Assembly: GCA_038496445.1 (NCBI GenBank)
Contig: JALMLS010000103.1
Coordinates: forward strand, 62,001-126,000
Length of the DNA stretch: 64,000 nt
DNA from: Trichosphaerium sp. ATCC 40318
Taxonomy: Eukaryota; Protista; Tubulinea
Reading direction: 5' to 3'
In this document: piece after piece, positions 14,123 through 58,970 of the stretch
Layout: each line of letters begins with the position of its first letter
Position numbering within the stretch: the first letter of the stretch is position 1
The notes under the pieces: model-generated
Seen by the model: the letters and a program-made list of their open reading frames with translations, nothing else
Told to the model about the DNA's origin: nothing
Databases searched by the model: none
Translations under genes and position numbers: made by a program

Positions 14123-14926
14123 CTAGTTTGAAGCCTGTGTCCATACAATAAGGTTGTTTCGTATCCGTTGAAGAACTAAGGTCGCTTCTTTGCATGTTTC
14201 ATTGCATACTGTATCTAGGCCGCTTATACCATCATCAAAAGCTGTCTGTGCCATTTCAATAGCTTCATTCTTATTTCCAAGATCATATTGTTTCCTGCTT
14301 TGTATCAAATGAAAAGAAAGAACCACAGGAAAAGCAGGTGGCAAATCTGAAATATAATCGTATGTGTCTTGTAATACTTGGATGGCTTGTTGTTTGTATT
14401 CTTCTCTATCATCACCATGTGAAACCTCAATGATGTATCGATAGTACTTGCTTTTAAAGGATGTGTAGATAACTTTAGTTTCACTGCCTACATATTCAAT
14501 TGAAAGAATAGTGTCATATGCTTTTATGGCGCGTTTACTTGCTTCTATGATCTTATCTTCCAGCTTCTTTCTGTATTCTTTTACTAAATACACTGTTGAT
14601 TCATCTGCCTTCCTAATATCCACATTACATCATGCGTAGGTACAAAAATATTACTGCTCTAAACCATATATTATGCGCCAAGATGCCCTCAACGCTCCTA
14701 CAACATTGGAAAAGGCAACGGAAACAAGATTTCTCTCATTTTCGGATAAATACTTGCCATCTTCTTTTGCTATGGCTACAAGTGCTTCTACAGCGTCTAC
14801 CATATCCTCATACTGCTCTGACTGAAATTAAAATGAGTAAATAATCGTAATCTGTTTAAAAAGCCGTTTAACCTCTTCAGCAATACTCGCTTGGTACGCT
14901 GCTGCTTCCCGTGTATTCATCGACAT
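14123..14926 (-). CDS. Divergent 14-3-3-like protein (copy A), 2 introns
   Basis: Spliced MSMNTREAAAYQASIAEE/SEQYEDMV..LSENERNLVSVAFSNVVGALRASWR..YYRY..AIEMAQTAFDDGI..LVLQRIRNNLIVW. Confidence 0.88.
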
Positions 14927-15189
14927 GTTACAAGCAATATTTACACTGTTGCCGTTCATGAACAGAATTAAGTTGTGGTCGTTAAGTTATTTGCCATTAG
15001 ACTTAGAATGTGGGTAATGTCAAGTAAATAAGTGGTGGTGACAATGCCGGATGGGTAAATTACAATGCTTCAACAATTTATCATTCGTTTAAAGACATCA
15101 CTTTAACAATATCAGACTGGAAACTAAAAACCTTGGAGAGAATGAGTTTGTACAGTTATTGGTCAAAATTTTATGTCAATGTTTTTTAT

Positions 15190-22942: not shown

Positions 22943-23815
22943 ATCGTAGCATCGTTTCCTAGAACCTTGAGGCTTGGCATAGCAACTCTATAACCAAAAG
23001 CTATTAGACTCCGTGTGTACCTTCCTAGAAATGTTGTACCACATGTATTGTCTATTTCATTCAAGTTTTGAGACAGACTGACTTTTAGCAAAAGAAATCC
23101 AGTTTCTGCCCGATCTGTCAGATCTGACAGATTTGACAGATCTTGCAAATTGTCATTTTTTAAATGTGAGCTACCTTCACGCCTGTCGAGTGAATCCACC
23201 GTTTCAAACCCACGTGATTTAACAAACCCATAGCAAAACATTTTATTTACATATTTGACGCCGCGTTTACAAAGCCTACAGCAACGCTGGTGGTTTTTTG
23301 GGAGGTTTTAACGTTATTATACTGCCCTGCTATTTGGATGCTGCCATAGCGCTTTTGTTAGCGTGGGGTAGGTGCTAGCGTAGCGCTAGCAAGTTATACA
23401 CGTACGTTGATTTTTTGAAGCAAAACATAAAGCAAACAGTGTTTGAGGCATTCATACCATGTTTGGCAGTAATGCGATAGCTTTGTAGGACATTATACCT
23501 TTTTAATTCGCTTTTAGCGCATTGAACACTTCTGTGGTTTGATCATACTGTGTACAGTTTGCGTAGGTAAAATGCTCTTCCATGGTCTGTTGAAAGTTAC
23601 ATTGAAAATTTTGCTATCACTTACCGTAAGGTACCTAAGTCATAAAATGAAGGACAACATTGTAACACAAATAGTTCACATTGTGATAGATCTACACCAT
23701 TTGGCAGAAGTGTCAGATCTTGCTAGATCTGCTAAAAGTGCTAAAAACTGACTTTCTGAAAATATTAGTAAAACTTGAATGAAACATACAATAGCATTAA
23801 AGTTACAACAAACGT

Positions 23816-26330
23816 CTAATTAAATCGCAACAGCATGTCATTTGCCAACGACTTTATTGAACACTTTGCGAATCTTTGATTTCTTTTTCCTCCTCCTTTA
23901 ATAAGCAAGATTTGTGAGAATTGCAAAGAAAAAAGTTTTTAAAAAAGATGTACGTGTATATTGGTTGTGTAGCCTCACGTTTGGCACGCACGTGTTGGTA
24001 GTGTTCGATAATAAGAGAAAATAGATTTTCTATATTCTTTCCTGTTTTGCAACTCACACTTATGAATGGTATACGCCATGCCTTTGCACGTAACATTCCT
24101 TCTTCATCAGATACTTGTCTACCAACTTCCAGATCGCATTTATTTGCAACCTATATCCACAACAATGTGAGAAATGTAATGGCTACACAATAACAAACAG
24201 CCTTTTAGCATACTAATATGAATGGCATTGAATCACTACGGAGACTTTTTATGATGTTCACGATCTTATCAAAGCTTGATCTATTTTGTACATCATACAC
24301 CAAAACAAGTATGTCGGCGTAACACCTAACATCTTAAAAAATGAAGGTAAAAACTGAAACTATTTCGCACTTTGTATCGTCAGCAGTGTCTATCACTTCC
24401 AATACATAATATAGCTCTCGTTTTTTAAGAGAAATTATAGTTCTATCCTCTGATTGCGGAATAAGTAAGTTATACCAGAGGGAAAGGAAGGATGTTAGAA
24501 CATAACTTTTCTTCAAAAAAAAATGGCTAAGGGTTTTTTCGCTAATTTTCATACCAATTGTTGGATTGTGTTTCTCCATGAACCAATCAGTTATATATTT
24601 GACAGTAATGGAAGTCTACTCCCAAAAGACTCAGTGATCGAGAAAGCTTGGAGGAAAAAAGAGAAAGAAAAACAATTTACTTACACATCCAACAGGTCCA
24701 TCTCCGAAAATGCAGCATTCGATCTAAAAAAGTACGTGAGTCAAATACCATTGTTTTGCAATAGACAAAATTAAATCACGTGGTGTACCGTTTCGCTAGA
24801 TTTCAACTTATTGGCATGTTTTTCTGATATTTTTAGACTTGGTAGCCGGTTTTTAACGTCTTTTCCGTATGTAGAACTAGAAATAGCAGTTTAGAATTAC
24901 ACAACGTTTCTACAATATCTTAGGTCAATAACCTGTTGATTTTGAGTACTTCCACCTTTAAATAAAGCGGTTAATGAGTGTTTAAGACCATTTGGTAAGA
25001 ATTTGAAGAAAATACACAAAACGAAGCTCAGAAGGCTCATTTTAATTTACTTTCGCGGCTATTATTAAACAAGTACCTTATGTGGCCATTGGTGGATAAA
25101 GGCTGTCTTGATATTGTCTCCTACTCGAAAACTGTAAACAAAGCTTACACCTACAAATAGTGCCTTCAGGTTCCGATCTAAAGTGTTGGGAATAAAGCCG
25201 TTGCCATATCATGTTATCATCTGAAAACGATTGAAAAGTTTTCGAGGTGGTGCCAAGAGCTACGATATGTTGAACATCAAGGTTGCAGCATATTAATATG
25301 AGAATCTCATGTGGGAATGACACAAAAGGCGATAATCCTTCTTCTTTCCTTTCCATGTTTTAATGAGAGAATGACCAAATGATGTTTCTGCTTGTGCAAC
25401 GTTCAGTGATTACTACAAGTTCAGAAAAAGATGGCAAGTTCCACATGTCACTAATCGTCGTTACAGATTCATGTATGGGTCTGACAGATTGTAACAGTGG
25501 ATAACTAGACGTGTGTAAGTCAGGTCTGTCCATATTAAGCTTCTCTTATAAGTCGCTATCGCGTTATCCAGGATGCGATCTGAATATCTTCATACACTGT
25601 CAGCACACCTTTGTACAATACTTTTTGTAGTTTTGTTTGCGTTTCTCAATAGAGCCATTTCATAGATAAAAAGTAGTTAACAGAAAAAAACTAGATTAGC
25701 TAAACCAAGCGTGCCAGTTGTCCACCAGAGAACAGTTCCCATGTAGATTAATGAACGTAAATAAGTTACAATATTTAAAATAGTATAATGTGTTTATCAG
25801 CCGTATAAACTCGCCTCATGAATTTTTAAATAGAAATCCTAAGCAATAAGAAACACAATTATTCTTCAGTTTGTATCCCACAAGCGAATTGTCTCGCCAA
25901 ACCTCAAAAAGAGGACTAGATAGGCAAGTGGCGGAGTACGTGATTGAAACGAAGCCACAACTACCAAAAAAGAATTAAAACATACAGAAATAGATGCTGC
26001 AAGTGTTGTTCAACCCGATATGACACGTGAGACATCACGTGATGCCAGACAATCTACAATATCTGATGATTTCAAAAAAAACTAAAACGGTTTTTTTTGA
26101 AGAGAAAGAAAAAACACATTCGTTGGTAAGTAGGCGCCAGTGAATGTAAAATTAATAACTAGAACTGTTCCGTCATACACAGAACATTATGCATTGTCGA
26201 ACTTTTTATCATTGAAGCTTGGTTCAGAAGTTGCCGCGGTGACGCTACAATGTCCAAATTGTGTATCTCCTTCGTCCAAAAACATAACCAGTTGCCATAA
26301 GGTACAGTACTTTGTTTTTATTTACAGTCT
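23816..26330. repeat. Inverted segmental duplication of ~35800-38495 (F-box-Ras gene plus ~1 kb upstream)
   Basis: Exons, introns and upstream non-coding DNA match in reverse complement (e.g. 25380-25560 vs 36740-36920; 25980-26260 vs 35890-36180). Ends approximate. Confidence 0.9.
23838..25356 (-). CDS. F-box-Ras-like GTPase fusion, copy 1 (degenerate G1/G3)
   Basis: F-box FVSFPHEILILICCNLDVQHIVALGTTSK..DNMIWQRLY, then spliced FGDGPVGCTS, HNPTIED, DTAD, ANKCD, SCK; ends KVFNKVVGK*. Confidence 0.8.
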
Positions 26331-26547
26331 TAAATAAGGGTCCGTAGACAGTAGTGACAACTGATAGAACTGTATTTTGTAATTGTCATTGAGAGTTCCA
26401 CGTTTAGTTCCATAAGTAATTCTCTTATGAGTGCCATCTGACTTCAAAGCTACTTTTGTCTTTATGTTTCCTGTATGGTTGACAAGGCTAAAGCACAATA
26501 AAAATACACTCTAAGATACACGCAAGAGTTAGCGAAACCGTTTTATG

Positions 26548-26677
26548 TCTAACAGCACTTGTAAGTGAAATAGCAGTACTGTCTCTTCAAGTTTTCAGCC
26601 GGACTGACTTGAAGAAAATATTAGTAAAACTTGAATGACACAACAGTACTGCTATTTCACCTACAAGTGCTGTTAGA
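26548..26677. repeat. 35-bp inverted repeat (1 mismatch) around a ~60-bp spacer
   Basis: tctaacagcacttgtaagtgaaatagcagtactgt ... acagtactgctatttcacctacaagtgctgttaga. Confidence 0.85.
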
Positions 26678-26766
26678 ACTGTCATTTCTCTCACATTTCA
26701 GAAAACTTTTACCGCCCAAACGTGTCAGAGCAAGCCCGCTCATGTATCCAATCTCGTTGTTTACGG

Positions 26767-27018
26767 ACCCACGTTTTTTCCGAATTTAAAGAAAAAATTC
26801 GAAAAAATAGAATTCGATACAAAAACCGAATGCCTATACCCACCAATGGATCACTATATGTGAGCGAAGGTCGGGTTCTAGTTCCGAGCACAGCGAGGAC
26901 CCGACTGTAAGTGAACCAGGCGCTTTCTAGTTTAGTGGACTGCCCTAGCTATGCATCTTTCTACGAATTCTATTTTTTCGAATTTTTGTTTTCGGAAAAT
27001 TCGGAAAAAACTATGGGT
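26767..27018. mobile_element. MITE-like element with ~50-bp imperfect TIRs
   Basis: acccacgttttttccgaattt..aaaaattcgaaaaaatagaattcg versus cgaattctattttttcgaatttttg..aaattcggaaaaaactatgggt. GC-richer core with a gtcggg..cccgac hairpin; tgttta on both flanks (imperfect TSD). Confidence 0.7.
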
Positions 27019-27244
27019 TGTTTATCCAAGTAATATTATAGCTTTCGAAGACACTCGAAATGGGTTACTGGTAGCAACAAAAACTATATAAACACTGTAC
27101 AAAGTGACAATATTGTTTTCGAAGATAATTGAAATGGGTATCAATAAATTTGATAAAATTGCCACTTAACCCACAATTAGGCTAAACAGTGCTATAATCC
27201 TAGTTTATTAGTGGCTAACCCTAAAATACATCTACTTGACGCCA

Positions 27245-28515
27245 ATGCGGACATTAAAATTAGTTACAATAGGAGATGGAGCAGTTGGTATGCAAAAACA
27301 GCTTAAAATGAACAATTCTATGTTAACTGTCACCGAAAAGGCAAGACATCCTTATTTATACGATATACAACCGGATCGTTCCCTGGCGAATACAGTACGG
27401 CTCTATTTTTACGTTTCGACGCTAATATACGCCTTAGTACCAACAGTTTTCGACAACTACAGGTAATAAAAGCTTATCAATTTGAAAAACTCTGTTTTTG
27501 TATTGAAACCATTTGCATGACGATATGTATAGCGCCAATGTGATGATGTTGGGAAAGCCAATTTCTCTAGGTATACACAAGCCTAATTAGGTTCTTTTTT
27601 CTTATCCTTCTGGGTTTTTCTCTCCCAGAGTTTCTAATATTGGTTTCCTAAGGTTTATGGGATACAGCAGGACCTGAGGATTATGATAGGCTGAGACCTT
27701 TGAGCTATCCTGTACGATGACACTTTTTCCAGAATCATTTGTTTTTCAAGCAAAAAACCTGAACGGTTGATGTTTCTCTCGCCACATCAAGGATAAAACG
27801 TGCTACTTTCACTTTTCCGTATATACAGCTTGTAAGTCATGTAATGTGCTTGGGACTGACTGCGTTTATGGTGTTGTGACCAAAACACCCGTTTATCACC
27901 TTTTTTTGTATTATAATGTTGTAGGTGTTGTTGCATTCTCATATGATTTTTTTTAGTCAACGGATGTTTTTTTAATTACTTTCAGTCTTAGCAACAGAGC
28001 TAGCTTGGAAAATGTTGCAAGAAAGGTGCCTATATAACTCATTAGCAGTTTTGTTGAAACCATTCTTTAATCTCTGTTTTTTTTCAGTGGAAACCTGAGG
28101 TGAAACACCATTGCCCTGGTGTGCCTATAATACTTGCTGGTCTCAAAATGGATTTAAGAACAAAATTAAAGGCTGATGGAAGTCCATACGACTGTATTAC
28201 AACAGAAGAAGGTCAAAAGATGACAAAAGAAATAGGAGTAAGTGTATCACATCAAAAATCTCGTTTTTGTTTTATCACCATGTGCTAAATAAATGAAGGC
28301 AAATTCATATGTAGAATGTAGTTCTATTACTGGAGAGGGTGTTACAAGTGGTACGTTGAATTGGAAAACAAGCTAACTTTGTTTTGTTTTTGTGTTTGCA
28401 TTGCTATGTACTGATGTTGACTTTAGTGTTTAACGAAAGTATTCTTGCGGGTTTAGCAGGTACTGGTTTTTTAACACTAAAATCAAAAGAAAAAGGCAAT
28501 TGTGTCGTAATGTGA
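27245..28515 (+). CDS. Rac/Rho-family small GTPase with Gln61->Pro (copy 1)
   Basis: Spliced MRTLKLVTIGDGAVGKTS..FPGEYIPTVFDNYSANV..GLWDTAGPEDYDRLRPLSYP..GLKMDLR..YVECSS..CVVM* (CAAX). Confidence 0.93.
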
Positions 28516-29206
28516 CACATTAGCCGCCTATAAAATACGAAAAATGATACCAATAAATACGCTTTTAAAAACCTTGTTGTTATATGGGTGCTTGTATTTC
28601 TAGTACATAAGATGCAACTAACCTAATTGGGATAAGCCAATCTTGTTAGATCCCTGTCGTCCATTTGGCTCCTACAACACCACAGCTTGAATAATTCTAC
28701 CAATCTAAAAAACAAACCCAGCCCAACGCCTTAATACCCTCATGATTTACAACCAAATAAGTTTATCTCATTTGCACCTGCCTCTAAATCTTCATCTGTT
28801 TTGTACGAGATATATTAATCTTATGTGCACCCCTTAACGTGAATCTGCTATGCATTACAAGAGTACAAGCTGATAGTGTGTATGCCTTCACACCATTTGT
28901 TATTGTATCACAATATCGCACTACCAGAGAGCAGCTCCACTTCAGTTTCGGTTCTAATGTAGATACAAAAATGTGACGTTTGGGCAAATGTCCCTGTTTG
29001 ACAATATGCACTATTAACTTGATTGGCAGCGCAACAATGTTGAAGCGCTGATCTGTGCTTCTGTATTTCACTGTGCTCTCGAATTTTTGAGTTTGTTTTA
29101 CGGCTGTGGAACTCGAGACGTCTTTTTAGTTTTCTAAAAATACTCGAGTTTTCCGGCACCATACTACTTTCACCGTACTTGTATGTTTGGTCGTACTCAT
29201 TAAGAC

Positions 29207-30771
29207 ATGGAAAGGAAAGAAGGATTGTTGCCTTTTGTGTCATTCCCACACGAGATTCTCGTATTAATATGCTACAACCTTGATGTTCAACATATCGTAG
29301 CTCTTGGCACCACCTCGAAGGCGTTTAAATTGTTTTCAGCTGATAACATTTTGTGGCAACGGCTTTACGCCCAACGCTTTATATCAGAACCTAAAGGTAC
29401 CATTCTAGGCGTTTTAAGCCTTATTTACGTTTAAATTCGATAAGGTGACAATATCAAGAAAGCGTTTATCTACGAATGGACACATAAGGTACTTGTTTAA
29501 TAATAGCCGCGAAAGTAAACAAAACCAAGCCTTCTTAGCTTCGTTTTGTGTATTTTCTTCAAATTCTAACCAAATGGTCTTAAACACTCATTAATCGCTT
29601 TGTTTAAAGCTGGAACTACTCAAAATCAACAGGTTATTGACCTAAGATATTGTAGAAACGTTGTGTACCTCTAAACCACTATTTCTAGTTCTACATACAT
29701 AGAAAACATTAGAGACCGGCTACCAAGTCTAAAAATATCAGAAAAACATGCCAATAACTTGAAATCTAGCGAAACGGTACATCACGTGATTTATTTTGTC
29801 TATTGCAAAAAAATGGTATTTGACTCACGTCCTTTTTAGATCAAATGCTGCTTTTTCGGCGATGGAGCTGTTGGATGTGTAAGTAACAACATTCTTTTCT
29901 CATCTTGGTTTTTGTTCCTTGTGAGCTTTAGCTCACTGTATTTGATTAGACTTCGATTATTGTTAAATTTCTAACGGATTGGTTCATGGATGAATACGAT
30001 CCAACAATTGGTACAAAAATTACGCCAAAAAACCTACCAGCTTTTTTAGTAAGAAAACTCTAATTTAACACATCCAACATCCATCCTCCCTTTCTCTGTT
30101 TTCGCTCACATTCTTCGCTATCAGAGGATACAATTGTGATGTCTCTAAATAAAGGAAAGCAATATACTATTTTGGAAGTGATAGACACTGCTGGGCAAGA
30201 AGAGTGCGAAATACTGTTTTCGGTACTAATTATTAAGTTTCATTTGAAGATATAGCGCAATGCGCGATCTATATATGCGTGTCAGCAAAATTTTTGTCAT
30301 TGTATATTCTATACAAAATAGAATAAGCTTTGATGATACCGTACACTTCAGAGACCAAATCTTCCGTTGTAATGATAGTAATTCAGTGCCAATCGTATTA
30401 GTATGCTACAGCTTTTGTTCACATATACCCAGTACATTTCTCACATTGTTGTGGATATAGGTTGCAAATAAATGCGATCTGGAAGTTGGTAGACAAGTAT
30501 CTGATGAAGAAGGAATGTTGCGCGCAAAGGCATGGGATGTACCATTCATAAGTGTGAGTTGCAAAACAGGAAAGAATATAGAAAATCTATTTTCTCTAAT
30601 AATCGAACACTATCAACGTGTGGTTATAGAACCAATACTCAAGTACGCCTTTGTCACAACTTATGTCACACAATCCTCATATCTTTGTGTTAAAATAGGG
30701 AGACGAAAAATAAATCAAAGCTTCTCAAAGTGTTCAATAAAGTCCTTGGTAAAAAAGATAGAAAAAAGTAG
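29207..30771 (+). CDS. F-box-Ras-like GTPase fusion, copy 2 (most Ras-like)
   Basis: F-box exon, then FGDGAVGCTS, DEYDPTIED, DTAGQEEYSAMRDLYMR, ANKCD, SCK; polybasic end KVFNKVLGKKDRKK* without CAAX. Confidence 0.88.
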
Positions 30772-30920
30772 AAAGAAAGAAGGAATAAAATCAGTTTTTC
30801 TAATACACGTCACCTATTGATTTATGAGAACATCCAAGCTGTAATACAGAAAATACAAACAATTAATGGACCACTCAAAGCCTCTGACTATCAAAAAACC
30901 GCTGCCATTGTTACAGGCAA

Positions 30921-31048
30921 ACGTTGTTATTACAAGCAATTATACAAAAAGGGGTTTGGGTTTTGGTGATCATTTTTTACATATGTCGAACATTAAATTT
31001 ATTCGTCATAGTATTCACCTTCTTCTTCATAATCACCAATAGTATCAA
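30921..31048 (-). pseudogene. Duplicated 3' end and 3'UTR of alpha-tubulin
   Basis: Near-identical to 38690-38817, including the codons for [11 protein letters not shown]. Confidence 0.9.
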
Positions 31049-31239
31049 AGTGAGTTTAAAGAGTGTCAGAAACTATCGGGCTAGAAATATATGTCAAAGT
31101 TAGTCCATGAGCACATGAGAAATTTTCAAGTTGGTGTTGTTAAAGTTGACAGTTGTAAGCACCAAATTCGCCACAACCACCTCTAACCATAAAACTCTTA
31201 CATAGCAATTATTGAAATACAAAGGAAGAAAAAGACATA

Positions 31240-32230
31240 AACAATGCATATGAGGACATATCCGAGCTTGAAGCACTACCAATTGAATTAATAGTGCATA
31301 TTCTCAAACAAGTGAGATATCCGGTCTAATCAGCTCAAACGTGCCGCTTGTTGCGAGATATTGTTCACTACCACATCGGATACAGTTTTATCTATATTAT
31401 AAGATAACAAAGCAAAGATGCTTTCTGGTAGTCCGCTACTCCAGAATACAATTATTGACATGAATTGTAGCGCAATAACAGATGAAGGTGTTGCGGCAAC
31501 ATGAGATTGATTTATCGTACACATATGTATCTGATGAAGGTTTAAAGGCATTGGCAGGTGTACACTATCAACTTGATTGGTTGTTAGATTGGACAACATT
31601 GTCAATATAAGGGAGACGCGCTTGGGAGGAAAGACGCTCAGTCTTTGGTGGCTCTAGCGTAGCCAAACGAGCAGATTTATTCTACATTTAAGAACACTCG
31701 TGTGAATTGCAAATGTGTTTGAAGGAAAAATAAAGAAATAATTTTTACAAAAAAAAGAAAAAGGATTTTAGGGAGGGTGAGGGGATGTTTTGATTGCTCG
31801 CCATTGTTGTTGTTGTTTCCTATTGTGTCCTTCGATATTGACAGTCTTGTTCAGTCCAACCAAACGCTTGATAACAGACAATGCAGGGTTAAAAGAAATT
31901 TCAGGTGTACATACTATTGGCTTGTCCAAGAAAGCAATAACAGATTACCAAGGTATTAAAGCACTGACTGGTGCACATGAAATAAGGAGACTTTTTGTAA
32001 TTAGGATACACGCTCGTCAAGAGTGAGTTGCTTGAGATTTACCTAATGCTGCTTCTAACCAAAGCCTGAAACTTATGGCTCGCAGCCACACTATAAACCC
32101 TGGAACGGATGCATCCAATGCGATAGTGATTGTATGGACAGACTTGAGCGTTTCAGTGGAGCATCTGTTATATCTGTGTATGCTCCACTCAGGTGATTTA
32201 TTCGCTCTACCCAAAAACGGAGTACGGTTC
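31240..32230 (+). pseudogene. Heavily decayed F-box-LRR pseudogene, interrupted at ~31610-31800
   Basis: LEALPIELIVHILKQVRYPV* F-box, plus fragments ITDEGVAA, VSDEGLKALAGV and LKEISGVHTIGL in several frames. Confidence 0.7.
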
Positions 32231-32255
32231 ATTGAACAATAAAATATCTTGTAAC

Positions 32256-33056
32256 ATGTCAATGAATGCACGAAAAGCAGCAGTGTACCAAGCGAGTATT
32301 GCTGAAGAGGTTAAACGGCTTTTTACACAGAATACGATTATTTACTCATTTTAATTTCAGTCAGAGCAGTATGAGGATATGGTAGACGCTGTAGAAGCGC
32401 TAGTAGCCATAGCAAAAGAAGATGGCAAGTATTTATCTGAAAACGAGAGAAATCTTGTTTCCGTTGCCTTTTCCAATGTTGTAGGAGCGTTGAGGGCATC
32501 TTGGCGCGTAATATATGGTTTAGAGCAGTAAGATATTTGTACCTACGCATGATGTAATGTGGATATTAGGAAGGCAGATGAATCAGCAGTGTATTTAGTA
32601 AAAGAATACAGAAAGAAGCTGGAAGATAAGATCATAGAAGCAAGTAAACGCGCCATAAAAGCATATGACACTATTCTTTCAATTGAATATGTAGGCAGTG
32701 AAACTAAAGTTATCTACACATCCCTTAAAAGCAAGTACTGTCGATACATCATTGATGTTTCACGTGGTGATGATAGAGAAGAATATACACAACAAGCCAT
32801 CCAAATACTAGATGAAATTTATGATTGTATTTCACTTCTGTCACCTAGTTCTACGCTGGCTCTTTCTTTTCATTTGACACAAAGCATGAAACAATATGAA
32901 CTTGGAAATAAGAATGAAGCTATTGAGATGGCACAAAAATCTTTTGATGCTGCTATACCTGACCTTGATTACTATACTAACGAATATGAACTCAAACAAG
33001 TGACGACAATTCTTGTACAGCTGCGACAAAATATTACTGATTGGACTAGCTTATAA
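32256..33056 (+). CDS. Divergent 14-3-3-like protein (copy B), 2 introns
   Basis: Same exon structure as copy A; LSENERNLVSVAFSNVVGALRASWR..YCRY..AIEMAQKSFDAAI..ILVQLRQNITDW. Confidence 0.88.
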
Positions 33057-33694
33057 ATTTGGTTTTTGTTTATTCCAATAAACTGATGACAAGATTATAG
33101 TTGTGAAAAAAGCTGGGAACGTAATAGGCTTAGCAAAAACAACTCACTGTTTCAAATTGGGTTTTTTTTTTTGCTGAGCATTGTTCCACTTGACTATACA
33201 CGGATTATTTCTTTGTGCTACATAGATAAAGTGAACAAAGTTGGTAGTCAAAAGCCGCTATAACCTTCTTCTAAAGAGGGTTGTTGTATACAATTTCTAT
33301 CAAGTAACAATGAACAAACAAGCTGTGCCTGACTGTGGACATTGTATGAAACAGCATAAAACAAGAAGTATGGCAGAGCTTTTTAAAAGTGACCTTTACT
33401 GATAAATATGTTCCACTTTGTTCTGTGGGCAGAGTACAGCCTTTCAATTTAAATATGAGACAAAATACTACAGGCAAATGAATTTATTTGCTCAGAGTGT
33501 CACTGTGTTCTTATCCATGAATACCACAATTCACGTTGTATTAGTATGTGCATCAGTGACGAAAACTAGAGCGTTCAAGAATTCCATACCAAACAGAACT
33601 TCTGCAAACGTAAATTAAATAATATGAGTATTTTATGGGTGCTTACATACATTTGCATCATTGATAGGTAATGCTTTTAATTTGCAACTACATA

Positions 33695-35113
33695 TCAATA
33701 GTCAAAAAGAAACAGCTGCTCATCTTCACATTCAATCATTTTAAGGTCACTCTTTTCTAGATCAAGAATAAATTCATCTGTGAGCTTATCACACCATAAC
33801 ACACATAATGTTGTAAGACCGCCAGAAAGAAGTGGAGGAAACCACTCACTTGTTGCATTTGTTGATGAAATATCAAGGATACATACTCCTGCAATACTTT
33901 TCATGCATGTACCAGTAATGCCTTTACATGAGGCAATACCAAGCTTATGTACTCCAACCAAAGCTGACACGCCTAAATCTGTAACTGCAGTCCGTTCCAA
34001 ATTGATAGTATGTACCCCTGTTAAAGCTGTAATACCTTCATCAGTCACTTTTGTGCCCATCAAATTTATAGTATGAACACCTGCCAGTGCCGACACATCA
34101 GTGACTATTGTATTTTCCAACACTATAGTATGAACACCAGCTAGTGATGGTATACATGTATCTGTCACTGCTGTTTCAGTTAAATCTATATGGTAAACAC
34201 CACCCAATGCTGATACGCCTATATCAGTTACTTGTGTTTCTTGTAAATTTATACTGTGAACACCAGCCAATGCCGAAACTCCTGAGTCTCCAACTAACAA
34301 TGATTGATATAGTGCTATGGTATGAACACCAGCAAGAGCTTTGACACCTTCATCTGTGACTCTAGTAACACTTAAGTCTATAGTATGAACGCCTGCTAGA
34401 GCTTTAATGTCGCCATCTGTAATGTCAGTACCAAGTAAATTAATTTTATGTGCACCAGACAGTGCTGAAAGACCTTCCTTTGTAAAACCTTTCGCACTTG
34501 ATAGATCAATGGTATGTACTCCAGACAATGATTTTAACACATTGTCTGTTACTATTTCACAACTACTCAGCTGAACATTTTGTACCGCAGTAAGTGTTTG
34601 CAAACCAAGCTCTGTTACATTATCAACACGATACATATAAAAGTACTTTAAATGTCCTGCAAGCATCATAATTCCAGCATCTGTGATTAATGGGCAACAA
34701 AACAACAATAAGTGAGCTACGCCATAAACATACTTCAATCCATTATCAGTTATATGATCGGTTTTCTTGAGTTCCAGTTTGCGAACACCAGAAAGAAACC
34801 CAAGATCACTGTCTTTTGCTTGAAAACCTGGAAAATCTGATCGTATTGAAATTATGGTATTTTGGAGAAGAGGACTTCCTGAAAGACGAGAACAACTTGC
34901 AGATGATCGAACATGTACTCGCTTATAACCAACATGATGGTGAACAATATCCGATAGTTGTTTACAGCTTTGAGAAACAGGGTATCGAGATTTAGCGTCC
35001 ACAAACTCAAGTATATACACGATTATCTCCGGTGGGATGTATAAAAGCTCAGTAAGGTTTGGTTTGTGCTCAAATTGTTCATGTGAAGGTTCAGCCTTTG
35101 CTCTACACTCCAT
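33695..35113 (-). CDS. F-box + LRR protein (~13 GVHTIxLxxTxVTDxGVxALA repeats), intronless
   Basis: LLYIPPEIIVYILEFV F-box followed by regular ~24-aa repeats in a continuous ORF. Confidence 0.92.
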   Translation of the reverse strand: MECRAKAEPSHEQFEHKPNLTELLYIPPEIIVYILEFVDAKSRYPVSQSCKQLSDIVHHHVGYKRVHVRSSASCSRLSGSPLLQNTIISIRSDFPGFQAKDSDLGFLSGVRKLELKKTDHITDNGLKYVYGVAHLLLFCCPLITDAGIMMLAGHLKYFYMYRVDNVTELGLQTLTAVQNVQLSSCEIVTDNVLKSLSGVHTIDLSSAKGFTKEGLSALSGAHKINLLGTDITDGDIKALAGVHTIDLSVTRVTDEGVKALAGVHTIALYQSLLVGDSGVSALAGVHSINLQETQVTDIGVSALGGVYHIDLTETAVTDTCIPSLAGVHTIVLENTIVTDVSALAGVHTINLMGTKVTDEGITALTGVHTINLERTAVTDLGVSALVGVHKLGIASCKGITGTCMKSIAGVCILDISSTNATSEWFPPLLSGGLTTLCVLWCDKLTDEFILDLEKSDLKMIECEDEQLFLFDY

Positions 35114-35349
35114 TACGCCTAAAAACACGTATTACATCGTTTAAATTACGAGCTTGGCTTTTATTAGCGATTACTTGTTTTGTACGTACTGGTGTACTTA
35201 CAATTCTTCGTACAAGCGATATACAAACAGCAGGCTTTATTACCGCAATTGTAGAACTAATTTTTGTTTCTTCTAATGCGACTGTTGAAGACCAAACCGA
35301 ATCCTCAGAACATTGTTCTAGCCAAGATTTTATCTGATTTATTACTGTC

Positions 35350-35470
35350 TCATTTCCATTCCAAGTTTGCAGACATCCACGTGCTTGTCAAATAGAGAAA
35401 AATGTATATTAATTGCACTTGAACCTGAAAGAGATGTCAATGAAGATAGGTAGCAGCGTTGTCTCTGAGA
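35350..35470 (+). pseudogene. Decayed copy of an arrestin-gene exon (12243-12380)
   Basis: catttccattccaagt.tgc.gacatccacgtgct.gtcaaat..agaaaaatgt...cttgaacctgaa...cagcgt.gtctct aligns to the arrestin FPFQVCGHPRARQI exon and contains stops. Confidence 0.8.
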
Positions 35471-36943
35471 GCCACTGCTACCAATGCTGCAAAAGTCTAC
35501 ATTTGTAAAATGTATGTTGCTTTGAATTTTCAGTGTTGGTTTTGAGAGGGAAAATAAAATAATCATCCGTCCAGTATCCAAGTTTGTTTGACTGATTGTG
35601 AGTTATTTTTTTGTGCTATTGTTGTTTGTTTTATTAAAAGGGAGGAAAAGTTGATTAAGATTTGCTAAGAAATCACAGACTATTGTCAATACTGAGTTTT
35701 CGCAATCGAAAGAATTGTGGCGTGTACACCAAGAAGTTACAGAAGTCAGCGTATGGAACTCTCAATGGACAAGTACAAAATACACTTCTATCAGTTGCCA
35801 AGACTGTAAATAAAACAAAGTACTATACATTTTCTATGGCAAACTGGTTATGTTTTCAGACGAAGGAGATACACGAGTTGGGACATTGTAGCGTCACCAC
35901 AACAACTTCTGAACCAAGCTTCAACGACAAAATGTTCGAGATGCAAGCTGGTATACAAGGGTTCGACAATGCATAATGTTCCGCGTATGACGGAACAGTT
36001 CTACTTTATTGACTAGCGCCTGCTTACACGAATGTGTTTTTCAATTTCTTCAAAAAAACGTTCTAGTTTTCCCATTTTTTGAAATCATTGATATTTTAGA
36101 TTGTCCCGCATCACGTGACATCTCACATGTAATATCGGGTTGAACAACACTTGTAGCATCTATTTCTGTATGTTTTAATTTTTTTTGGTAGATGTGGTTT
36201 CGTTTCAATCACGTATTCGGTCACGTGCGTTTCTAATTGATTTAGTACTCTTTTGGCTGTATATTTGCTGATGTTGGTGAAGCATACTGATTAAGTAGAT
36301 CCAAAAACCGTACCAGTAATTGTATCAGATTTATAAACAGTTTATAGATCGAGACATGTCGCTTGTGGGATACAAACTGAAGAATAATTGTGTTTCTTAG
36401 AGCAGACAACTTCGCTTAGGATTTCTATTTAAAAATTCATGAGGCGAGTTTATACGGCTGATAAACACATTATACTATTTTAAATATTGTGACTTATTTA
36501 CGTTCATTAATCTACATGGGAACTGTTCTCTGGTGGACAACTGGCACACTTGGTTTAGCTAATCTAGTTTTTTTTCTGTTAACTACTTTTTATCCATGAA
36601 ATAGCTCTACTCTATTTCTGAGAAACGCGAACAAAACTACAAAGTGGTGATAAAAGTATTGTACAGAGGTGTGCTGACGACAATGCTGACAGTGTATGAA
36701 GATATTCAGTTAACGATTTGTTCGCATCCTAGATAGCGCGATAGCGACTTATAAGAGAAGCTTAATATGGACAGACCTGACCTACACACGTCTAGTTATC
36801 CTCTGTTACAATCTGTCAGACCCATACATGAATCTGTAACGACGATTAGTGACATGTGGAACTTGCCATCTTTTTCTGAACTTGTAGTAATCACTGAACG
36901 TTGCACAAGCAGAAACATCATTTGGTCATTCTCTCATTAAAAC

Positions 36944-38470
36944 ATGGAAAGGAAAGAAGAAGGATTATCGCCTTTTGTGTCATTCCCACATGAGATTCTC
37001 GTATTAATATGCTGCAACCTTGATGTTCAACATATCGTAGCTCTTGGCACCACCTCGAAAACTTTTCAATCGTTTTCAGATGATAACATGATATGGCAAC
37101 AGCTTTATTCCCAACACTTTAGATCGGAACCTGAAGGCACTATTTGTAGGTGTAAGCTTTGTTTACAGTTTTCGAGTAGGAGACAATATCAAGACAGCGT
37201 TTATCCACCAATGGCCACATAAGGTACTTGTTTAATAACAGCCGCGAAAGCAAATTAAAACAAGCCTTCTGAGCTTCTTTTTGTGTATTGACTTCAAATT
37301 CTTACCAAATGGTGTTAAACACTCATTAACCGCTTTATTTAAAGGTGGAAGTACTCAAAATCAACAGGTTATTGACCTAAGATATTGTAGAAACGTTGTG
37401 TAATTCTAAACTGCTATTTCTAGTTCTACATACGGAAAAGACGTTAAAAACCGGCTACCAAGTCTAAAAATATCAGAAAAACAAGCCGATAAGTTGGAAT
37501 ATTGCCGAACGGTACATCACATGATTTATTTTTTCTTTGCAAAAAATGGTATTTGACACGTCCTTTTTTAGATCACATGCCACTTTTTCGGAGATGGACC
37601 TGTTGGATGTGTAAGTAAAACATTGTTGTTTTTCTTTCTCTTTTTTCCTCCAAAATTTCTCGCTCACTGAGCCTTTTGGGAGTAGACTTCCATTATTGTC
37701 AAATATATAACTGATTGGTTCATGGAGAAACACAATCCAACAATTGGTATGAAAATTAGCGAAAAAACCCTTAGCCGATTGTTTTTTGAAGAAAAGTTAT
37801 GTTTTAACACATCCTTCCTTTCCCTCTGGTATAACTTACTTGCTCCACAATCAGAGGATAAAACTATAATGTCGGTTAAAAAACGAGAGCTATATTACGT
37901 ATTGGAAGTGATAGACACTGCTGACTGTAAAAAGTGCGAAATAGTTTCAGTATTACCTTCATTTTTTCAAGATTCGATGTTAGGTATTACACCGCCGACA
38001 TACTTGTTTTGGTGTATGATGTACAAAATAGATCAAGCTTTGATAAGATTGCGAATTTCATAAAAATGATGCATATTGATGATTTTCCAGTGCCATTCAT
38101 ATCTGTATGCTAAAAAGGCTGTTTGTTATTGTAGCCATTACATTTCTCATTCTTGTGGATATAGGTTGCAAATAAATGCGATCTGGAAGTTGATAGACAA
38201 GTATCTGATGAAGAAGGAATGCTACGTGCAAAGTCATGGCGTGTACCATTCATAAGTGTGAGTTGCAAAACAGGAAAGAACATAGAAAATCTATTTTCTC
38301 TTATTATTGAACACTACCAACACGTGCGTACACGTGAGGCTAAACCAATATACACGTACATCTTTTTTATAAACTTCTTCTTTTGCGCAATTCTCATATA
38401 TCTTGCTTAAAGGAGGAAAAAGAAATCAAAGATTCGCAAAGTGTTCAATAAAGTCGTTGGCAAAAGATGA
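36944..38470 (+). CDS. F-box-Ras-like GTPase fusion, copy 3 (degenerate G1/G3)
   Basis: F-box exon, then FGDGPVGCTS, HNPTIED, DTADCK, ANKCD, SCK; ends KKKSKIRKVFNKVVGKR*. Confidence 0.82.
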
Positions 38471-38767
38471 CATGCTGTTGCGATTTAATTAGATAAAAAG
38501 CAGAAATGACGTAGAAATAGAATCAGTTTTCAAACACTAGTATCAACCATCGATTGCAGATAGAAAGAAAGAATAAAATAAAGTCTTCACAACTTGCACC
38601 TATTGACCCATCCATGCCGTAATTCATAACAAGATCAAACTTGCTCACAACTACAAAAAAACAAAGACGGCTTTTTTTTTAATTTTAAAACGTTGTTATT
38701 ACAAGCAATTATACAAAAAGGGGTTTGGGTTTTGGTGATCATTTTTTACATATGTCGAACATTAAAT

Positions 38768-40714
38768 TTATTCGTCATAGTATTCACCTTCTTCTTCATA
38801 ATCATCAACAGTATCAGAAGCAACCTCTTCGTAATCCTTCTCCAAAGCAGCCAAATCTTCACGAGCTTCGCTAAATTCGCCTTCCTCCATGCCTTCTCCG
38901 ACATACCAATGGACCTGAAAGAGAGAACGTAAGTCACTTGGAACGAAGAGCGAAAAAAAAATCCAAAAGTTTCTGAGAAACTGAACGTACAAAAGCGCGC
39001 TTGGCGAACATCAAATCGAATTTGCGGTTGATGCGTGAAAATGTTTCAGCAATTGCTGTAGTGTTAGCGAGCATAAGAACAGCTCGGGAAACCTTTGCTA
39101 GGTTGCCACCAGGTACAACTGTAGGTGGACGGTTGTTGATACCGCACTTGAAACCAGTTGGACTCCAGTCTACAAATTGAACGTTTCTAGAAAAAAAGTC
39201 AATATCAAGTCGCTTTGGTTACGCGTTTTTCTCGCTTGCTTCTTACCTTTTACTCTTGATGTTGGATACAGCAGCTTGAACATCCTTGTGTACTACAGCA
39301 CCACGGTACATGAGGCAAGTAGCCATGTACTTACCACGTTTTGGGTCGCACTTGCACAACATGTTTTGTTGCTCGAAAACAGCAGATGTGATTTGTCCAA
39401 CAGTCATTTCCTAAGCGACAAGATTAGTTTTTCGTTTCAAAAATTTACTCCAATTCAAAAAGAGACAAAACGTACCTCATAGTAAGCAGTTTTGGTGCCG
39501 ACAATAGGAGCGTATGAAGGGAGGATAAAGTGAATACGTGGGTATGGAACAAGATTTGTTTGGAACTCGTTGATATCAACGTTCAAGCAACCCTCGAAAC
39601 GAAGGGAAGTAGTCAAGGATGAGATGACTTGAGCGATCAATCTGTTGAGATCTTTGTAGCTAGGACGCTCAATACCAAGAGAGTCACGGCAGATATCGTA
39701 AATAGCCTTAAAGAGGTATAAGTATACAATGTAAAGGCGATAAACGGCCAAAGGAAAAAAAAGAAAGCAAAACAATTTGTACCTCGTTATCAAGAAGGAA
39801 AGCGCAATCAGTGTGTTCAAGAAGAGAGTGGGTAGACAATACTGAGTTGTATGGTTCTACAACGGAGGTTGCGACTTGTGGGGATGGGTAGATACAGAAA
39901 TCGAGTTTAGATTTCTTGGCGTAGTCTACGGACAAACGGTGGAGCAAGAGAGCACCAAAACCGGATCCAGTACCACCACCGACAGAGTGGAAGATAAGGA
40001 AACCCTAAAAAGGAGTTTAGGAAAAACGGTACAAGGCGGGAAAAATGTAGAAACAAACATAATTTACTCGCGTGTGCTTTGTAATCGCAAACGACGATGT
40101 CAGACACAAGTTTTGCAAAAAAAAATGTTTTGCGCGGGATGAATTTACTTGAGCGTAGACGTACTTGCAAGCCAGAGCATTGGTCTGTGAGCTTTCTGAT
40201 GCGGTCGAGGGTTACATCAATGAGGTCTTTACCGACTGTGTAGTGACCACGAGCGTAGTTGTTGGCAGCGTCTTCCTATCGGTTGTGTGAGTGTTGTAAT
40301 TCGTTTTAAAAGGAAACGCACTTTGCCAGAAATCAATTGTTCAGGGTGGAAGAGTTGGCCGTATTCGCCAGTGCGTACTTCATCAATTACGCTAGGTTCA
40401 AGGTCTAACAAACAGATCAGCTTGCTTTTGGCGCGATAAGCCTAAAAAGCAATACGTACCGACGTAAACGGAACGAGGTACGAATTTACCAGCGTCAGTC
40501 TCTGTAAAGAAAGTTTGGAAGCCTTGGTCAAGATCGCCGTTGATCCCTTGAGCACAGGTTCCATCAGGCTTAATACCGTGTTCTACGTATACTGTGAGCA
40601 CCAAAAACCATGGATAAGAATTTTTGGCGCCATACCTAGGCAATAGAGCTCCCAGCAAGCATTACCGGTTTGTACGCCAGCTTGTCCGATGTGAATTGAA
40701 ATGACTTCTCTCAT
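38768..40714 (-). CDS. tubA: Alpha-tubulin, intron-rich
   Basis: [95 protein letters not shown]. Confidence 0.98.
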
Positions 40715-44725: not shown

Positions 44726-47700
44726 ATGGCGGATATTAAAAATGATCTCGTTGAGCGCATCAAAACTCAGTGTGGCGCTTTGCAGTTAAATACTATAACA
44801 TCAATTGAAATTGATGGCTCACTGTACGTTATATCCAAACGCTACGCGTATCCCTAACGTTTGTAGCTGGAATCAAGAGCTAGAACCATCACAATGGAAC
44901 GGAGATTTACTGGGTATAATGGCGTTGTCTCTAGAGACCAATACAAGCCTTGAGAGGTACTGAGTATAAAATTACAGCGAAATAACCCAAAGCAGCGTCA
45001 AACTTAAAAAGATGGATTCTCCCGCATTAGCTTCGTTTCTTGCATGCCTGAAAACAAACGATACAGTAGATACAGTGGTATTAAATACGTTTTTTATTTC
45101 TATTTGTCTAAAAAGGCGTTTTTAAGGTGATCGAAACAAGTGATTTTGCTACGTGCGGTCGGTTTGTTGCTGACATCCTAGCAACAGAACAAATAAAGGA
45201 ACTACGCTTTAAAAAAGTAAAAAGTATCTCTTTTGAAGAGGTACGCGTACATTAATTGGTTACAATACGTCTTTATGGCGTTTGAGATTCTTTAATATTA
45301 ATTATTGGTTTTTGAAGTTTTCCGTTGTTATTGACGGACTTGGAAGAGTCCAAACGCCGTTGAAATTAACTATTAATGCGTGTGAATTACCAGATAACTT
45401 TTCTAATCTACTTGGTGGCGTATTAAAGAAGAATTGCGCCATTAAATATTTGAATCTTTCTTCAAATAATTTAAGAGATCATGGTACGTTTAAGATGCCA
45501 TTTCATAATTTGATTCATGTATTTAATCCTATTGGATGAGCTTATTTGGTATAGATTGTTCAATACTGTCAGCGTGTTTAAAAAACAATACAGTTTTACA
45601 AAGTCTGTCATTATCTGGAAACCGTATAAGTCAGAAGGGAGCTGTTGATCTTGCCACGTGTATGACGTTTAACATGACGTTGCGCTTACTAGAATTTGAA
45701 GATAATCCTGTACCAGATAAAGGTACACATGATTAATAATCACAATGTTGACATCTGTCACGTTTTTTTTCGGTTATCTTTTTTTTTTCACATTAAAATA
45801 CTTTTTAGGTCTAGCATCACTTGGTCGTGCTTTATTCTATAATATTGGTTTAGAGTATTTAACAATACCAGAATTTAAAATCCCTTTCGCTGCTAAAGAT
45901 GTCTTTGCTACAGTAAGCCGCAAAAACTGGTAAAAAACCCAAAATCACTAATTTTTTAATAGGTTGGCTTAAGAAATTTCCGTTTGATAAAAGGTACGCT
46001 AAAAGAAATCTACTTTGACATTCCGGTTGGCTTTATGTCAAAAAGGGAAATAAAATGTAGTATGTATGTTAACACTTTGATGTAGTTAAGGGTGTTTTTA
46101 ATCGCACTGCACTCTTTAAAAAGAATGCTGGACCAGTTGAAGCACTTGTGATGGATGCTGTGGAACGATATGGACTCAGCCTCAATCTCAGTTCACGTGG
46201 AATATCTTCAATGCCTCAGAATTTGTGTACGAAGAAAACCCCAAAATGGCATTGTTTTAGATCTAAAACAATGTATAGGGAGTAAATTAGTCAACTTGAA
46301 GGAATTAGTACTGCTGGACAATCAAATAACCGAAATCCCGCCTTATTTTGGTACCATCAACAGTCATATTTGATTTTTTAATGTTCCAGTGCATCTTTCA
46401 AACACGTGTGATTAATTGAGTTTTCAAATTAGTTCACCTCGAGAAGCTTCAATGTCTTATATTAACAAAGAACCGTTTAACAACCCTATCAAGTAGTACA
46501 ATTGGTAAACTAACAAACTTGCGTATACTCAGTTTAAGGCACGTGGCATCTTGTTTAAGTTATTGTTGTTTTTGAAAGTTTAATACCTTACTTAGTCACA
46601 ACTTTTTGATGAGTTTGCCTGATTCTATTGGAAATCTCACCAATCTTCGTGTTCTTGATGTAAACTTTAATAATCTGGAGATACTTCCAGACTCAATAAC
46701 AGATTGTCATCATTTGACAGAAATATATTTACGAGGGAACAGACTTCACTCCCTCCCTGGAAATATGGAAAACCTACACCGGTTGAAGTTACTCGACATA
46801 CAAAGTAACCCTCTAGAGTACGTTATTCAACGCTAAAGAATTTACTTGTTAGTATAGATAACTACAATTGGACTTCTCAAACTTTTGTTTTGACAGCCTT
46901 TTTTATGAGTTATTTATGTGTATATTATAGTGGGATACTCGAGAGTGTATTACCTATAGAACCAGGAGTAATTTCAAGACCAGCAGCATTCGAGAAGCTC
47001 TTTTGGTACTTAAAAACATCAACAACAAATAAAATGGTTGATATATCAGTACTGAAAGTAATGATGCTTGTACGTCTAACCTAGCATTATTTATTTATAA
47101 TGGTATTACAAAGGGTGACTCTGGTGTTGGGAAATCATCGTTGGTCAATTACATGCGAACAGGAAGACCTAGCAAGCAGGTAATAAGCGTTATTTGTCCC
47201 GATTTATTGTTATTTGTTCGAATTAAGCTTCTCTTGTAGGGCATGATTACTGGATCTGCTTGTATGGAAATATCCAGTCACGCTAAGAGGGGCGTTTGGT
47301 TCGATATGTATGATTCATGTGGAGAAGAAACACTCAAACGTGCGTTTATCACAGACTTGCTAAAATACTAATACTTAATTAGCTACAACACAATTAGTAC
47401 GCAATCAAACATAATTTAATGTTCCGTTATAAAGTCAACTTATTCTTGTAGTTTATGACAAATTCTTGCGTGTACATTATTGTATTTAGCATAGAAGAAC
47501 CAGATACTGACGAAATAGACTATTGGCGTCAAGTATGTGACATTTTTTTAGCTGTCTTTTTTTCGTTTTGTTTGATGCTTTTTTTGTTATTTGTGTATCA
47601 ATCTAAATTGTTGTATTTAAGGTAATTGAACTCAATACCAAAAAATCAACACCTATAATATTGGTGGGAACACACTCTGATTCTAAAAAATCGAGCAAGA

Positions 47701-58109: not shown

Positions 58110-58970
58110 TAAGTAAAAAATCACGTGGACTATGAAACTATCTTTTCCGTAATGACCTAATTTCAGAACTGTAGATTCAATAAGTTTGAAGTGAAGTAAA
58201 GCTGTGATCTGACAGATATTGCAACTTCTGTTCAAAAACTACAAGATCTGACGAATCTTGTCAGTTCTGGAAAACAAAATCCATTTTTACAACGCATACA
58301 AATTATTGTGACACCACGTGTTCTTAACCACCATTATTGTATTTGGTACATTAGCTTATGTAGTTCTGTTGAAGTCTCTGATGGCCTATAAGGTCCAAAA
58401 GTTGTCCTATACTGGTACAAGTGCACACTCAGCGCAAGATACTTTCTTTTTTGTGTCCACATAAATTGTTCACTCTTTTGTTCTGTAGCCGTGTCCATAT
58501 AACAAGGATGTATAGTAGATGACTCACGTTGTCTAGCGTTCCCCTTGGTAGGTAGGGGTGTTAATTTTCTACCACCATGGTAATCAATCACTTGGCATAC
58601 ATTGAAATATTTTACAACTATCACATATCTAATTTGGATTGTTGAGCCAACAAGAATGCACTTAATTCAACTCTCGCTTCTTGTTTTTGCTAAGCAAACA
58701 AACAAGCTATGACAAAGTATCTTAAACAGCTAGTTATGATAGCAAGCAATATTGTGGCACCAACAGAACAACAATGTTGTCACTTGACGATGTACCACCA
58801 GAGACGTAAACACATGTTACAAAGTCAGGTCTTGAAGAGGATCTAGTAAAATCATTGATCAATACCAATCATTGATCAATACCTGTCAATGAGTTTTTAA
58901 CAAACCATTAGTGGACGAAAAAGCTTATTTATTAGTCTTGTTCTTTATTTTATTAATAAAATAGCTAATG

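Follow-up and report, generated by a model that had tools for sequence, protein, structure and literature searches.

Human and metazoan FBXO4 joins an F-box to an atypical small-GTPase domain that acts as the substrate receptor of a Skp1-Cul1-F-box (SCF) ubiquitin ligase (PMC7086354). Fusions of an F-box to a small GTPase have also been catalogued in the Euglenozoa, where the TbFRP family, restricted to that group, combines a FYVE domain that binds phosphatidylinositol 3-phosphate, an F-box and a GTPase resembling Rab18 and Ypt6 (PMC3593210), and in Naegleria, for which supplementary file 4 of Herman et al. 2021 lists many F-box proteins with Rab, Rho, Ran or G-alpha domains (PMC8296547). Small-GTPase domains are further found in the cullin-RING ligase adaptors Rab40b (Cul5) and RhoBTB (Cul3) (PMC13236570). 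Here we describe three genes that fuse an F-box to a Ras domain, found in a 64,000-nucleotide stretch (the window) of the marine amoeba Trichosphaerium sp. ATCC 40318, contig JALMLS010000103.1, positions 62,001 to 126,000 of the forward strand. On balance we favour a reading in which the encoded proteins are SCF substrate receptors that grip their targets by a Ras fold carrying the substitutions K16C and A146C, and form a small, lineage-restricted Trichosphaerium family.

The draft genome has 37.7% G+C, and its genes carry about eight introns each, 75 nt long on average (PMC10521059); the window is likewise AT-rich (35-42% G+C) with many short GT-AG introns. Models built by hand and by alignment give three uninterrupted open reading frames, copies 1 to 3, each of eight exons and encoding 260-272 amino acids (Table 1). 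The first-pass annotation had proposed three spliced F-box-Ras genes, and the models fall within exactly the limits it gave. A tblastn search of the whole window with the copy 2 product matched these three copies only. Exon 1 carries the F-box, recognised by the family profile of this ~45-residue motif (PF12937, with scores of 36.1 and 35.5 bits where 24.3 is the cut-off; PF00646 on copy 3, 27.4 bits). The LPxEIL...LW register agrees with that of the FBXW7 and FBXW8 F-boxes in weak profile matches to the PDB, and a further weak match in the same register is the 53-residue chain 1fs1_A, which we take to be the Skp2 F-box. The initiating methionine lies 12-14 residues ahead of the F-box, with no further N-terminal sequence. 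Exons 6 and 7 each match the Ras family (PF00071) singly, at 32-38 bits, and the nearest solved structures are R-Ras2, K-, H- and N-Ras and Rap2A, at ~135 bits.

Within the Ras domain the P-loop reads GDGAVGC/TS in copy 2 and GDGPVGC/TS in copies 1 and 3, the slash marking an exon junction. The cysteine aligns to the lysine of GGGGVGKSA in R-Ras2 and to that of other Ras proteins, so that neither the three copies nor their one transcribed relative, P0001, follows the G1 consensus GxxxxGK[ST]. The TGT codon for this residue, already noticed ahead of a GTAAGT donor with copy 2 as the example, was read in all three genes. We considered whether a different donor or acceptor might restore the lysine; the in-frame codon before exon 4 is TAG, and no other donor or acceptor can therefore supply it. 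At G5 every copy has SCK in place of SAK (Ala146 to Cys), a feature that the first-pass annotation had not recorded. G2 and the G4 motif NKCD are kept throughout. Alignment also upheld the earlier division of the copies: copy 2 carries the canonical Ras switch I and switch II, YDPTIED and DTAGQEEYSAMRD, and shares an intact G3 (DTAGQ) with P0001, whereas copies 1 and 3 have HNPTIED, DTAD at G3 and a deletion of 8-9 residues in switch II. All copies end in a conserved basic motif, KSK(I/L)xK(V/F)F(N/S)K(V/M)(L/V)GK, and, as had been read before, no CAAX box follows (the tails of the copies and P0001 end in ...GKKDRKK, ...GKR, ...GK and ...GKK). The domain is thus Ras-type in fold and sequence. 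With K16C and A146C in every copy, and G3 also lost from copies 1 and 3, it would be classed as a pseudoGTPase from its motifs.

In Ras-like GTPases, Lys16 makes contact with the beta and the gamma phosphate. The first-pass annotation had taken it as established that Ras with a defective P-loop binds nucleotide poorly, and this agrees with work on HRAS, in which K16N, G15A and D119N give an apo state with reduced nucleotide affinity, K16N being nucleotide-free, and A146T gives fast nucleotide exchange (PMC8936000). Similarly, the K16R form of Rac1 shows a GTP-loading deficiency (PMC13236570). These mutants share with the Trichosphaerium proteins either the position altered (16 and 146) or the expected effect, and by analogy would support a loss of nucleotide affinity here. 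The HRAS forms, however, are engineered or oncogenic, and prenylated, whereas the changes in Trichosphaerium are natural, fixed, combined and linked to an F-box, and the residue is cysteine.

When 1.84 billion representative proteins were searched exhaustively by HMMER for matches to the F-box exon, one true relative emerged, P0001 (307 amino acids, E = 6e-20), which shares the F-box and Ras architecture and has the P-loop GGGGVGCTA and SCK at G5. An AlphaFold2 model of P0001 superposes on K-, N- and H-Ras with a target-normalised template modelling score of 0.88-0.91 and a root mean square deviation of ~2 Å in Foldseek. The first-pass annotation had suggested a search for the F-box plus Ras architecture across eukaryotes and viruses; the one public relative of the copies is P0001. 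A word-index search with P0001 through 5.8 billion clusters found no other such protein, only ordinary Ras at 42-53% identity, and the IMG/VR viral contigs held no relative of the family in a test that reaches close relatives only; a giant-virus origin is thus not supported at that range. P0001 is encoded by a single continuous reading frame on two intron-free 1.8 kb contigs (L001 and L002) from JGI sample 3300016894. A second protein from this sample is labelled as an MMETSP transcript, which indicates that the contigs carrying P0001 are assembled mRNA. Every exon junction of copy 2 is contiguous in L001, and P0001 keeps the codons across all of the predicted junctions (SEPK/GDNIK, GVGC/T, PTI/ED, QEE/YSAM and IL/VANKCD). 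The fusion and the P-loop cysteine are therefore present in the RNA of a related gene, and this lends both of them indirect cDNA support. A degenerate DNA pattern for FISVSCKTG had no match in metagenome contigs; the pattern missed even L001, whose transcript sample the collection does not hold. A short protein fragment search with exon 7 of copy 2 also gave no match.

The P0001 contigs have features of their own. L001 (positions 1-1869; Ga0186627_102052) contains the complete 3' part of a Rab-like reading frame (GDTGVGKTN, WDTFSQHRF) 58 nt upstream of P0001, and the same was noted for L002. Either the transcript is dicistronic or the product of read-through, or the assembly has joined two genes that are neighbours. 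L001 and L002 diverge just past the P0001 stop codon.

Comparison of copy 2 with P0001 gave dS ~1.4, dN 0.25 and dN/dS 0.17, falling to 0.11 over the F-box and to 0.11 over G1 and switch I. Divergence of this depth under such constraint indicates that the P-loop cysteine is old and selected; judging from the alignments, K16C and A146C predate the split between copy 2 and P0001, and the cysteine is no recent lesion. We infer that the N-terminal F-box would dock the protein onto Skp1 and Cul1, and that the Ras fold, deprived of its P-loop lysine and altered at G5, would serve as the target-binding module of the ligase while binding nucleotide weakly or not at all. The basic and amphipathic C-terminal helix, which is conserved, probably places the protein or its complex on membranes. 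Because copy 2 and P0001 keep a near-perfect Ras switch I and II, they are expected to engage the partners of genuine Ras, and guanine nucleotide exchange factors (GEFs) of the Cdc25 type and effectors with Ras-binding or Ras-association domains would be the obvious candidate targets. In copies 1 and 3, where G3 and a portion of switch II are gone, the switch face may be drifting or diversifying.

How does this family relate to the systems described before? The first-pass annotation knew of no characterised system like it, and here it needs correction, as FBXO4, TbFRP and, in the supplementary listing, the Naegleria fusions all precede it. FBXO4 has the same elements in the role that we propose, an F-box and an atypical GTPase fold as receptor. 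In a protein language-model search with P0001, FBXO4 clusters were among the nearest neighbours (score 0.79-0.80, below threshold and a lead only), one of them with Pfam matches to an F-box and an Arf-type GTPase. The GTPase-like domain of FBXO4 reportedly binds no nucleotide (Zeng et al. 2010). The Trichosphaerium domain differs from it in standing near true Ras (42-53% identity, with switch I and II, NKCD and DTAGQ intact in copy 2) and in its basic C-terminal helix. Given how near to true Ras the domain stands, the fusion is likely to be independent of FBXO4 and much younger. TbFRP resembles the copies in having the F-box directly upstream of a Ras-like GTPase domain and in lacking CAAX (PMC3593210). 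Unlike TbFRP, the Trichosphaerium GTPase is of the Ras type and the copies gave no Pfam match to a FYVE domain, so that they lack the architecture that defines that family. On these sequence features the proteins do not belong to the TbFRP family and probably not to that of FBXO4, and with their G1 and tails they also fall outside canonical Ras.

The Naegleria proteins share the order of an F-box upstream of a Ras-superfamily GTPase, and they too form lineage-specific, expanding families with birth and death, for which a GTPase-linked ubiquitination has been proposed (PMC8296547, supplementary file 4). Their GTPases, however, are Rab-like, Rho, Ran or G-alpha; the sole Ras-family multidomain protein in that file has a BTB domain and not an F-box (PMC8296547), and the fusions are not known to carry a P-loop cysteine. 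In the language-model search, the feature neighbours ranked highest for P0001 were Rab40 clusters. Rab40 and RhoBTB, which are members of the Rab and Rho families, nevertheless use a different cullin-docking module, a SOCS box for Cul5 and a BTB domain for Cul3, and have it on the C-terminal side of the GTPase. What is specific to the Trichosphaerium genes is a Ras domain in the strict sense, the conserved pair K16C and A146C, and a conservative copy beside two remodelled ones.

The three copies are the product of recent segmental duplication, one direct and one inverted, with patchy gene conversion. Copies 1 and 3 lie in the two arms of an inverted duplication, and copy 2 shares 78-79% identity with each of them. 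Divergence between copy 2 and the other two is a mosaic, ~10% from exon 1 to intron 2, mostly 30-40% from intron 3 to exon 6 and ~10% again in exon 7; the mosaic spans introns, and it points to an older middle segment whose flanks have undergone gene conversion. Just downstream of copy 3 lies the 3' end of a gene with an acidic C-terminus that looks alpha-tubulin-like, and a truncated duplicate of it (the last ~110 bp and flank) sits downstream of copy 2, which indicates that the duplication unit reached past the F-box-Ras gene.

Several observations weigh against our preferred reading, and we collect them here. The splicing of the three window copies is deduced by homology. The F-box part of the AlphaFold2 model of P0001 has a predicted local distance difference test score of 43-63, its helices and a 37-residue linker being of low confidence. 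Copy 2 and P0001 have T35, DTAGQ, NKCD and Thr17 intact, as would suit a protein still able to bind nucleotide; in that case the Ras domain may act as a regulated switch and not as a passive binding module. Over their whole length copies 1 and 3 have a dN/dS of 0.76 between them, indistinguishable from neutrality. Both also depend on a weak donor, for intron 1 begins with GC in the context AAG/GCACTA, a feature missing from the first-pass annotation; the copy 2 introns are GT-AG throughout. Without splicing at the GC donor the product of copies 1 and 3 ends at ~94 amino acids, so that the full protein requires it. Other splicing that would avoid the GC donor was considered and rejected; the sole alternative would be a 19-nt intron, and retention of the intron leads to a frameshift and a stop. 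The 5' segment that bears the GC donor differs by only 1% between copies 1 and 3, and the donor could thus be a lesion of recent date that gene conversion carried from one copy to the other.

This raised the question of whether copy 2 is the sole working gene, copies 1 and 3 being pseudogenes of recent origin or sources of no more than an F-box peptide of ~94 amino acids. The weak donor, the recently homogenised 5' segment, the loss of G3, the deletion in switch II and the overall dN/dS would all fit. Neither copy, however, has a stop or frameshift over ~780 nt despite an exonic divergence of 5.0% (6.6% in introns). Each of the six exonic indels between them has a length divisible by three, as do 3 of the 11 intronic ones (Fisher p = 0.009), which indicates that the reading frame was maintained after the duplication that produced copies 1 and 3. 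The F-box has a dN/dS of 0.5 and the G4-G5 lobe one of 0.33, compared with 1.1-1.2 over G1 to switch I and over switch II to helix 3, although these regional values, like the other selection statistics for the copies, rest on few substitutions. We regard loss of function in copies 1 and 3 as possible, if doubtful.

The high values over the switch face bear on a second alternative, in which the protein is a bait, a nucleotide-free or fast-cycling Ras mimic that traps RasGEFs, Ras effectors or viral or bacterial Ras-modifying proteins for destruction by the SCF complex. It draws on the retention in copy 2 and P0001 of both canonical switches in a domain otherwise only 42-53% identical to Ras, on the apo-state and fast-exchange HRAS mutants (PMC8936000), on the ~1,581 gene models of giant-virus origin in the published analysis of the Trichosphaerium genome (PMC10521059), and on a switch face that varies most between the recent copies. 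Exons 3, 5 and 6 differ by 12.2% between copies 1 and 3, against 6.6% for all introns (p = 0.011), but the excess over the adjacent introns is not significant (p = 0.16). Between copy 2 and the other copies the introns of the middle segment have diverged as much as its exons (36-42% versus 13-40%), as expected of a mosaic of old and converted DNA rather than of selection. For the switch face of copies 1 and 3, diversifying selection and relaxed constraint are equally possible, and the signal of positive selection is no more than suggestive. Copies 1 and 3 moreover lack the switch II that Cdc25-type GEFs contact, and a pure trap needs neither NKCD nor Thr17, yet both are kept. A bait would make coherent sense of the copy 2 sequence; we think it unlikely. 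A bolder form, a natural 'bioPROTAC' in which a Ras mimic kept nucleotide-free by K16C and A146C on the SCF complex captures RasGEFs or the Ras-targeting proteins of giant viruses or intracellular bacteria for degradation, with recently duplicated paralogues diversifying their switch face as an innate-immune-like decoy repertoire, seems to us decidedly speculative. The three cysteines predicted to line the nucleotide pocket (16, 118 and 146) could also make the capture of partners redox-dependent.

It is also conceivable that these are working, if unusual, GTPases, in which Cys16 is tolerated at millimolar GTP and the nucleotide state gates recruitment of substrates to the ligase, a scheme put forward for Rab40 and also for the fusions of Naegleria, where the supplement speaks of 'GTPase-dependent ubiquitination' (PMC8296547). 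The G2 threonine, DTAGQ, NKCD and the Mg-binding threonine after the cysteine are all kept in copy 2 and P0001, and dN/dS is low over G1 and switch I. The phosphate contacts of Lys16 and the GTP-loading defect of Rac1 K16R stand against it, and G3 is also gone from copies 1 and 3; gating by nucleotide is in our judgement improbable. Least probable is that the F-box serves the turnover or localisation of a short-lived Ras-like signalling protein itself, for although the F-box of TbFRP was linked by its authors to the rapid proteolysis they observed (PMC3593210) and the title of a reference cited in PMC13236570 makes RhoBTB2 itself a Cul3 substrate, F-box proteins in general are substrate receptors, and such a role would leave unexplained why the switch face, and not the F-box, is the variable part.

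Intron 2 is, at ~350 nt in a genome with far shorter introns on average, among the best-conserved parts across the copies. In copy 2 it contains at ~29681-29790 a relic, ISSSTYIENIRDRLPSLKISEKHANNLKSSETV, which stop codons cut off at either side and which is a homologue of the 37-residue coding linker of P0001, and copies 1 and 3 have the same relic. A linker-coding segment seems to have turned intronic, or the reverse change to have occurred in the P0001 lineage. A cassette exon in copy 2 was considered and rejected, there being no stop-free in-frame segment between AG and GT, and no Rfam family was found in 23500-39000 that would account for the conservation.

Table 1. Positions of the F-box-Ras genes, their parts and neighbouring features in the window.
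Feature	Position	Strand	Remarks
Copy 1 gene	23838-25356	-	260 aa; exons 25164-25356, 25077-25120, 24685-24723, 24555-24615, 24371-24449, 24214-24325, 23954-24150, 23838-23895; inverted partner of copy 3
Copy 2 gene	29207-30771	+	272 aa; exons 29207-29396, 29445-29488, 29840-29878, 29950-30010, 30125-30203, 30250-30400, 30461-30642, 30699-30771
Copy 3 gene	36944-38470	+	261 aa; exons 36944-37136, 37180-37223, 37572-37610, 37686-37746, 37855-37933, 37984-38104, 38165-38355, 38413-38470
F-box-like domain, exon 1	29207-29396 (copy 2); 36944-37136 (copy 3); 25164-25356 (copy 1)	+; +; -	Pfam PF12937, 36.1 bits in copy 2
TGT, Cys at the Walker-A Lys16 position	29876-29878 (copy 2); 37608-37610 (copy 3); 24685-24687 (copy 1)	+; +; -	last codon of exon 3, directly before GTAAGT
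Exons 5-6 and intron 5 (beta2-beta3, G3/switch II, helix 3)	30125-30400 (copy 2); 37855-38104 (copy 3); 24214-24449 (copy 1)	+; +; -	segment differing most among copies
Exon 7 of copy 2, NKCD (G4) and SCK (G5)	30461-30642	+	most conserved Ras-domain part among copies; dN/dS 0.15-0.33
Intron 1 donor, GC and not GT	37137-37138 (copy 3); 25162-25163 (copy 1)	+; -	copy 2 has GT there
Intron 2	29489-29839 (copy 2); 37224-37571 (copy 3); 24724-25076 (copy 1)	+; +; -	351 nt in copy 2
Arms of the inverted segmental duplication	23815-25896; 36350-38493		90.9% identity; carry copy 1 and copy 3 and ~540 bp upstream of each
Tubulin-like gene, 3' end	38690-38920	-
Truncated tubulin-like duplicate	30870-31050
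Rac-type gene	27245-28515	+	between copies 1 and 2
Inverted duplicate of the Rac-type gene	within 58919-60414	-	85% identity
F-box/LRR gene	33695-35128	-	single exon, 477 aa
Fragments of similar F-box/LRR genes	~31240-32000		broken
14-3-3-like gene, two copies	32242-33056; 14126-14942	+; -	inverted duplication, 92.8% identity
Putative LRRK/Roco-like gene	45237-52193	+	multi-exon

The P-loop (GDGAVGKTS) of the Rac-type gene that separates copies 1 and 2 is normal, and the gene also encodes a CAAX box (CVVM). It reads WDTAGPEDYD, with proline for the catalytic Gln61, and the same proline is found in its inverted duplicate. The F-box and leucine-rich repeat (LRR) gene has repeats of ~24 residues of the form 'GVHTIxL...TD.G..AL', and broken fragments of similar genes lie nearby. 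Its best public relatives, at 36-46% identity, are JGI entries, two of them labelled MMETSP, and one (P0132) was traced to the sample of P0001. We detected no relationship between its F-box and that of copy 2. The 14-3-3-like gene is divergent, and a six-frame translation read by eye suggests a large LRRK/Roco-like gene encoding an LRR, a Roc-type GTPase, a kinase and C-terminal repeats. F-box and MORN domains are the commonest among the Trichosphaerium genes assigned to giant-virus transfer (PMC10521059).

FBXO4 demonstrates that an SCF ligase can use a GTPase fold as its substrate receptor; we know of no target for any of the protist F-box-GTPase families. The Trichosphaerium family is comparatively easy to read, as its Ras domain is near enough to true Ras for partners to be predicted, its two fixed substitutions sit at positions of known effect in HRAS, and a conservative copy adjoins the remodelled ones. 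It offers a direct experimental way to ask whether cells bait Ras regulators with disabled Ras domains for regulated destruction, and it would also provide a natural template for engineered degraders. If the proteins are merely generic adaptors, they would be another case of amoebae making ligase receptors by domain shuffling.

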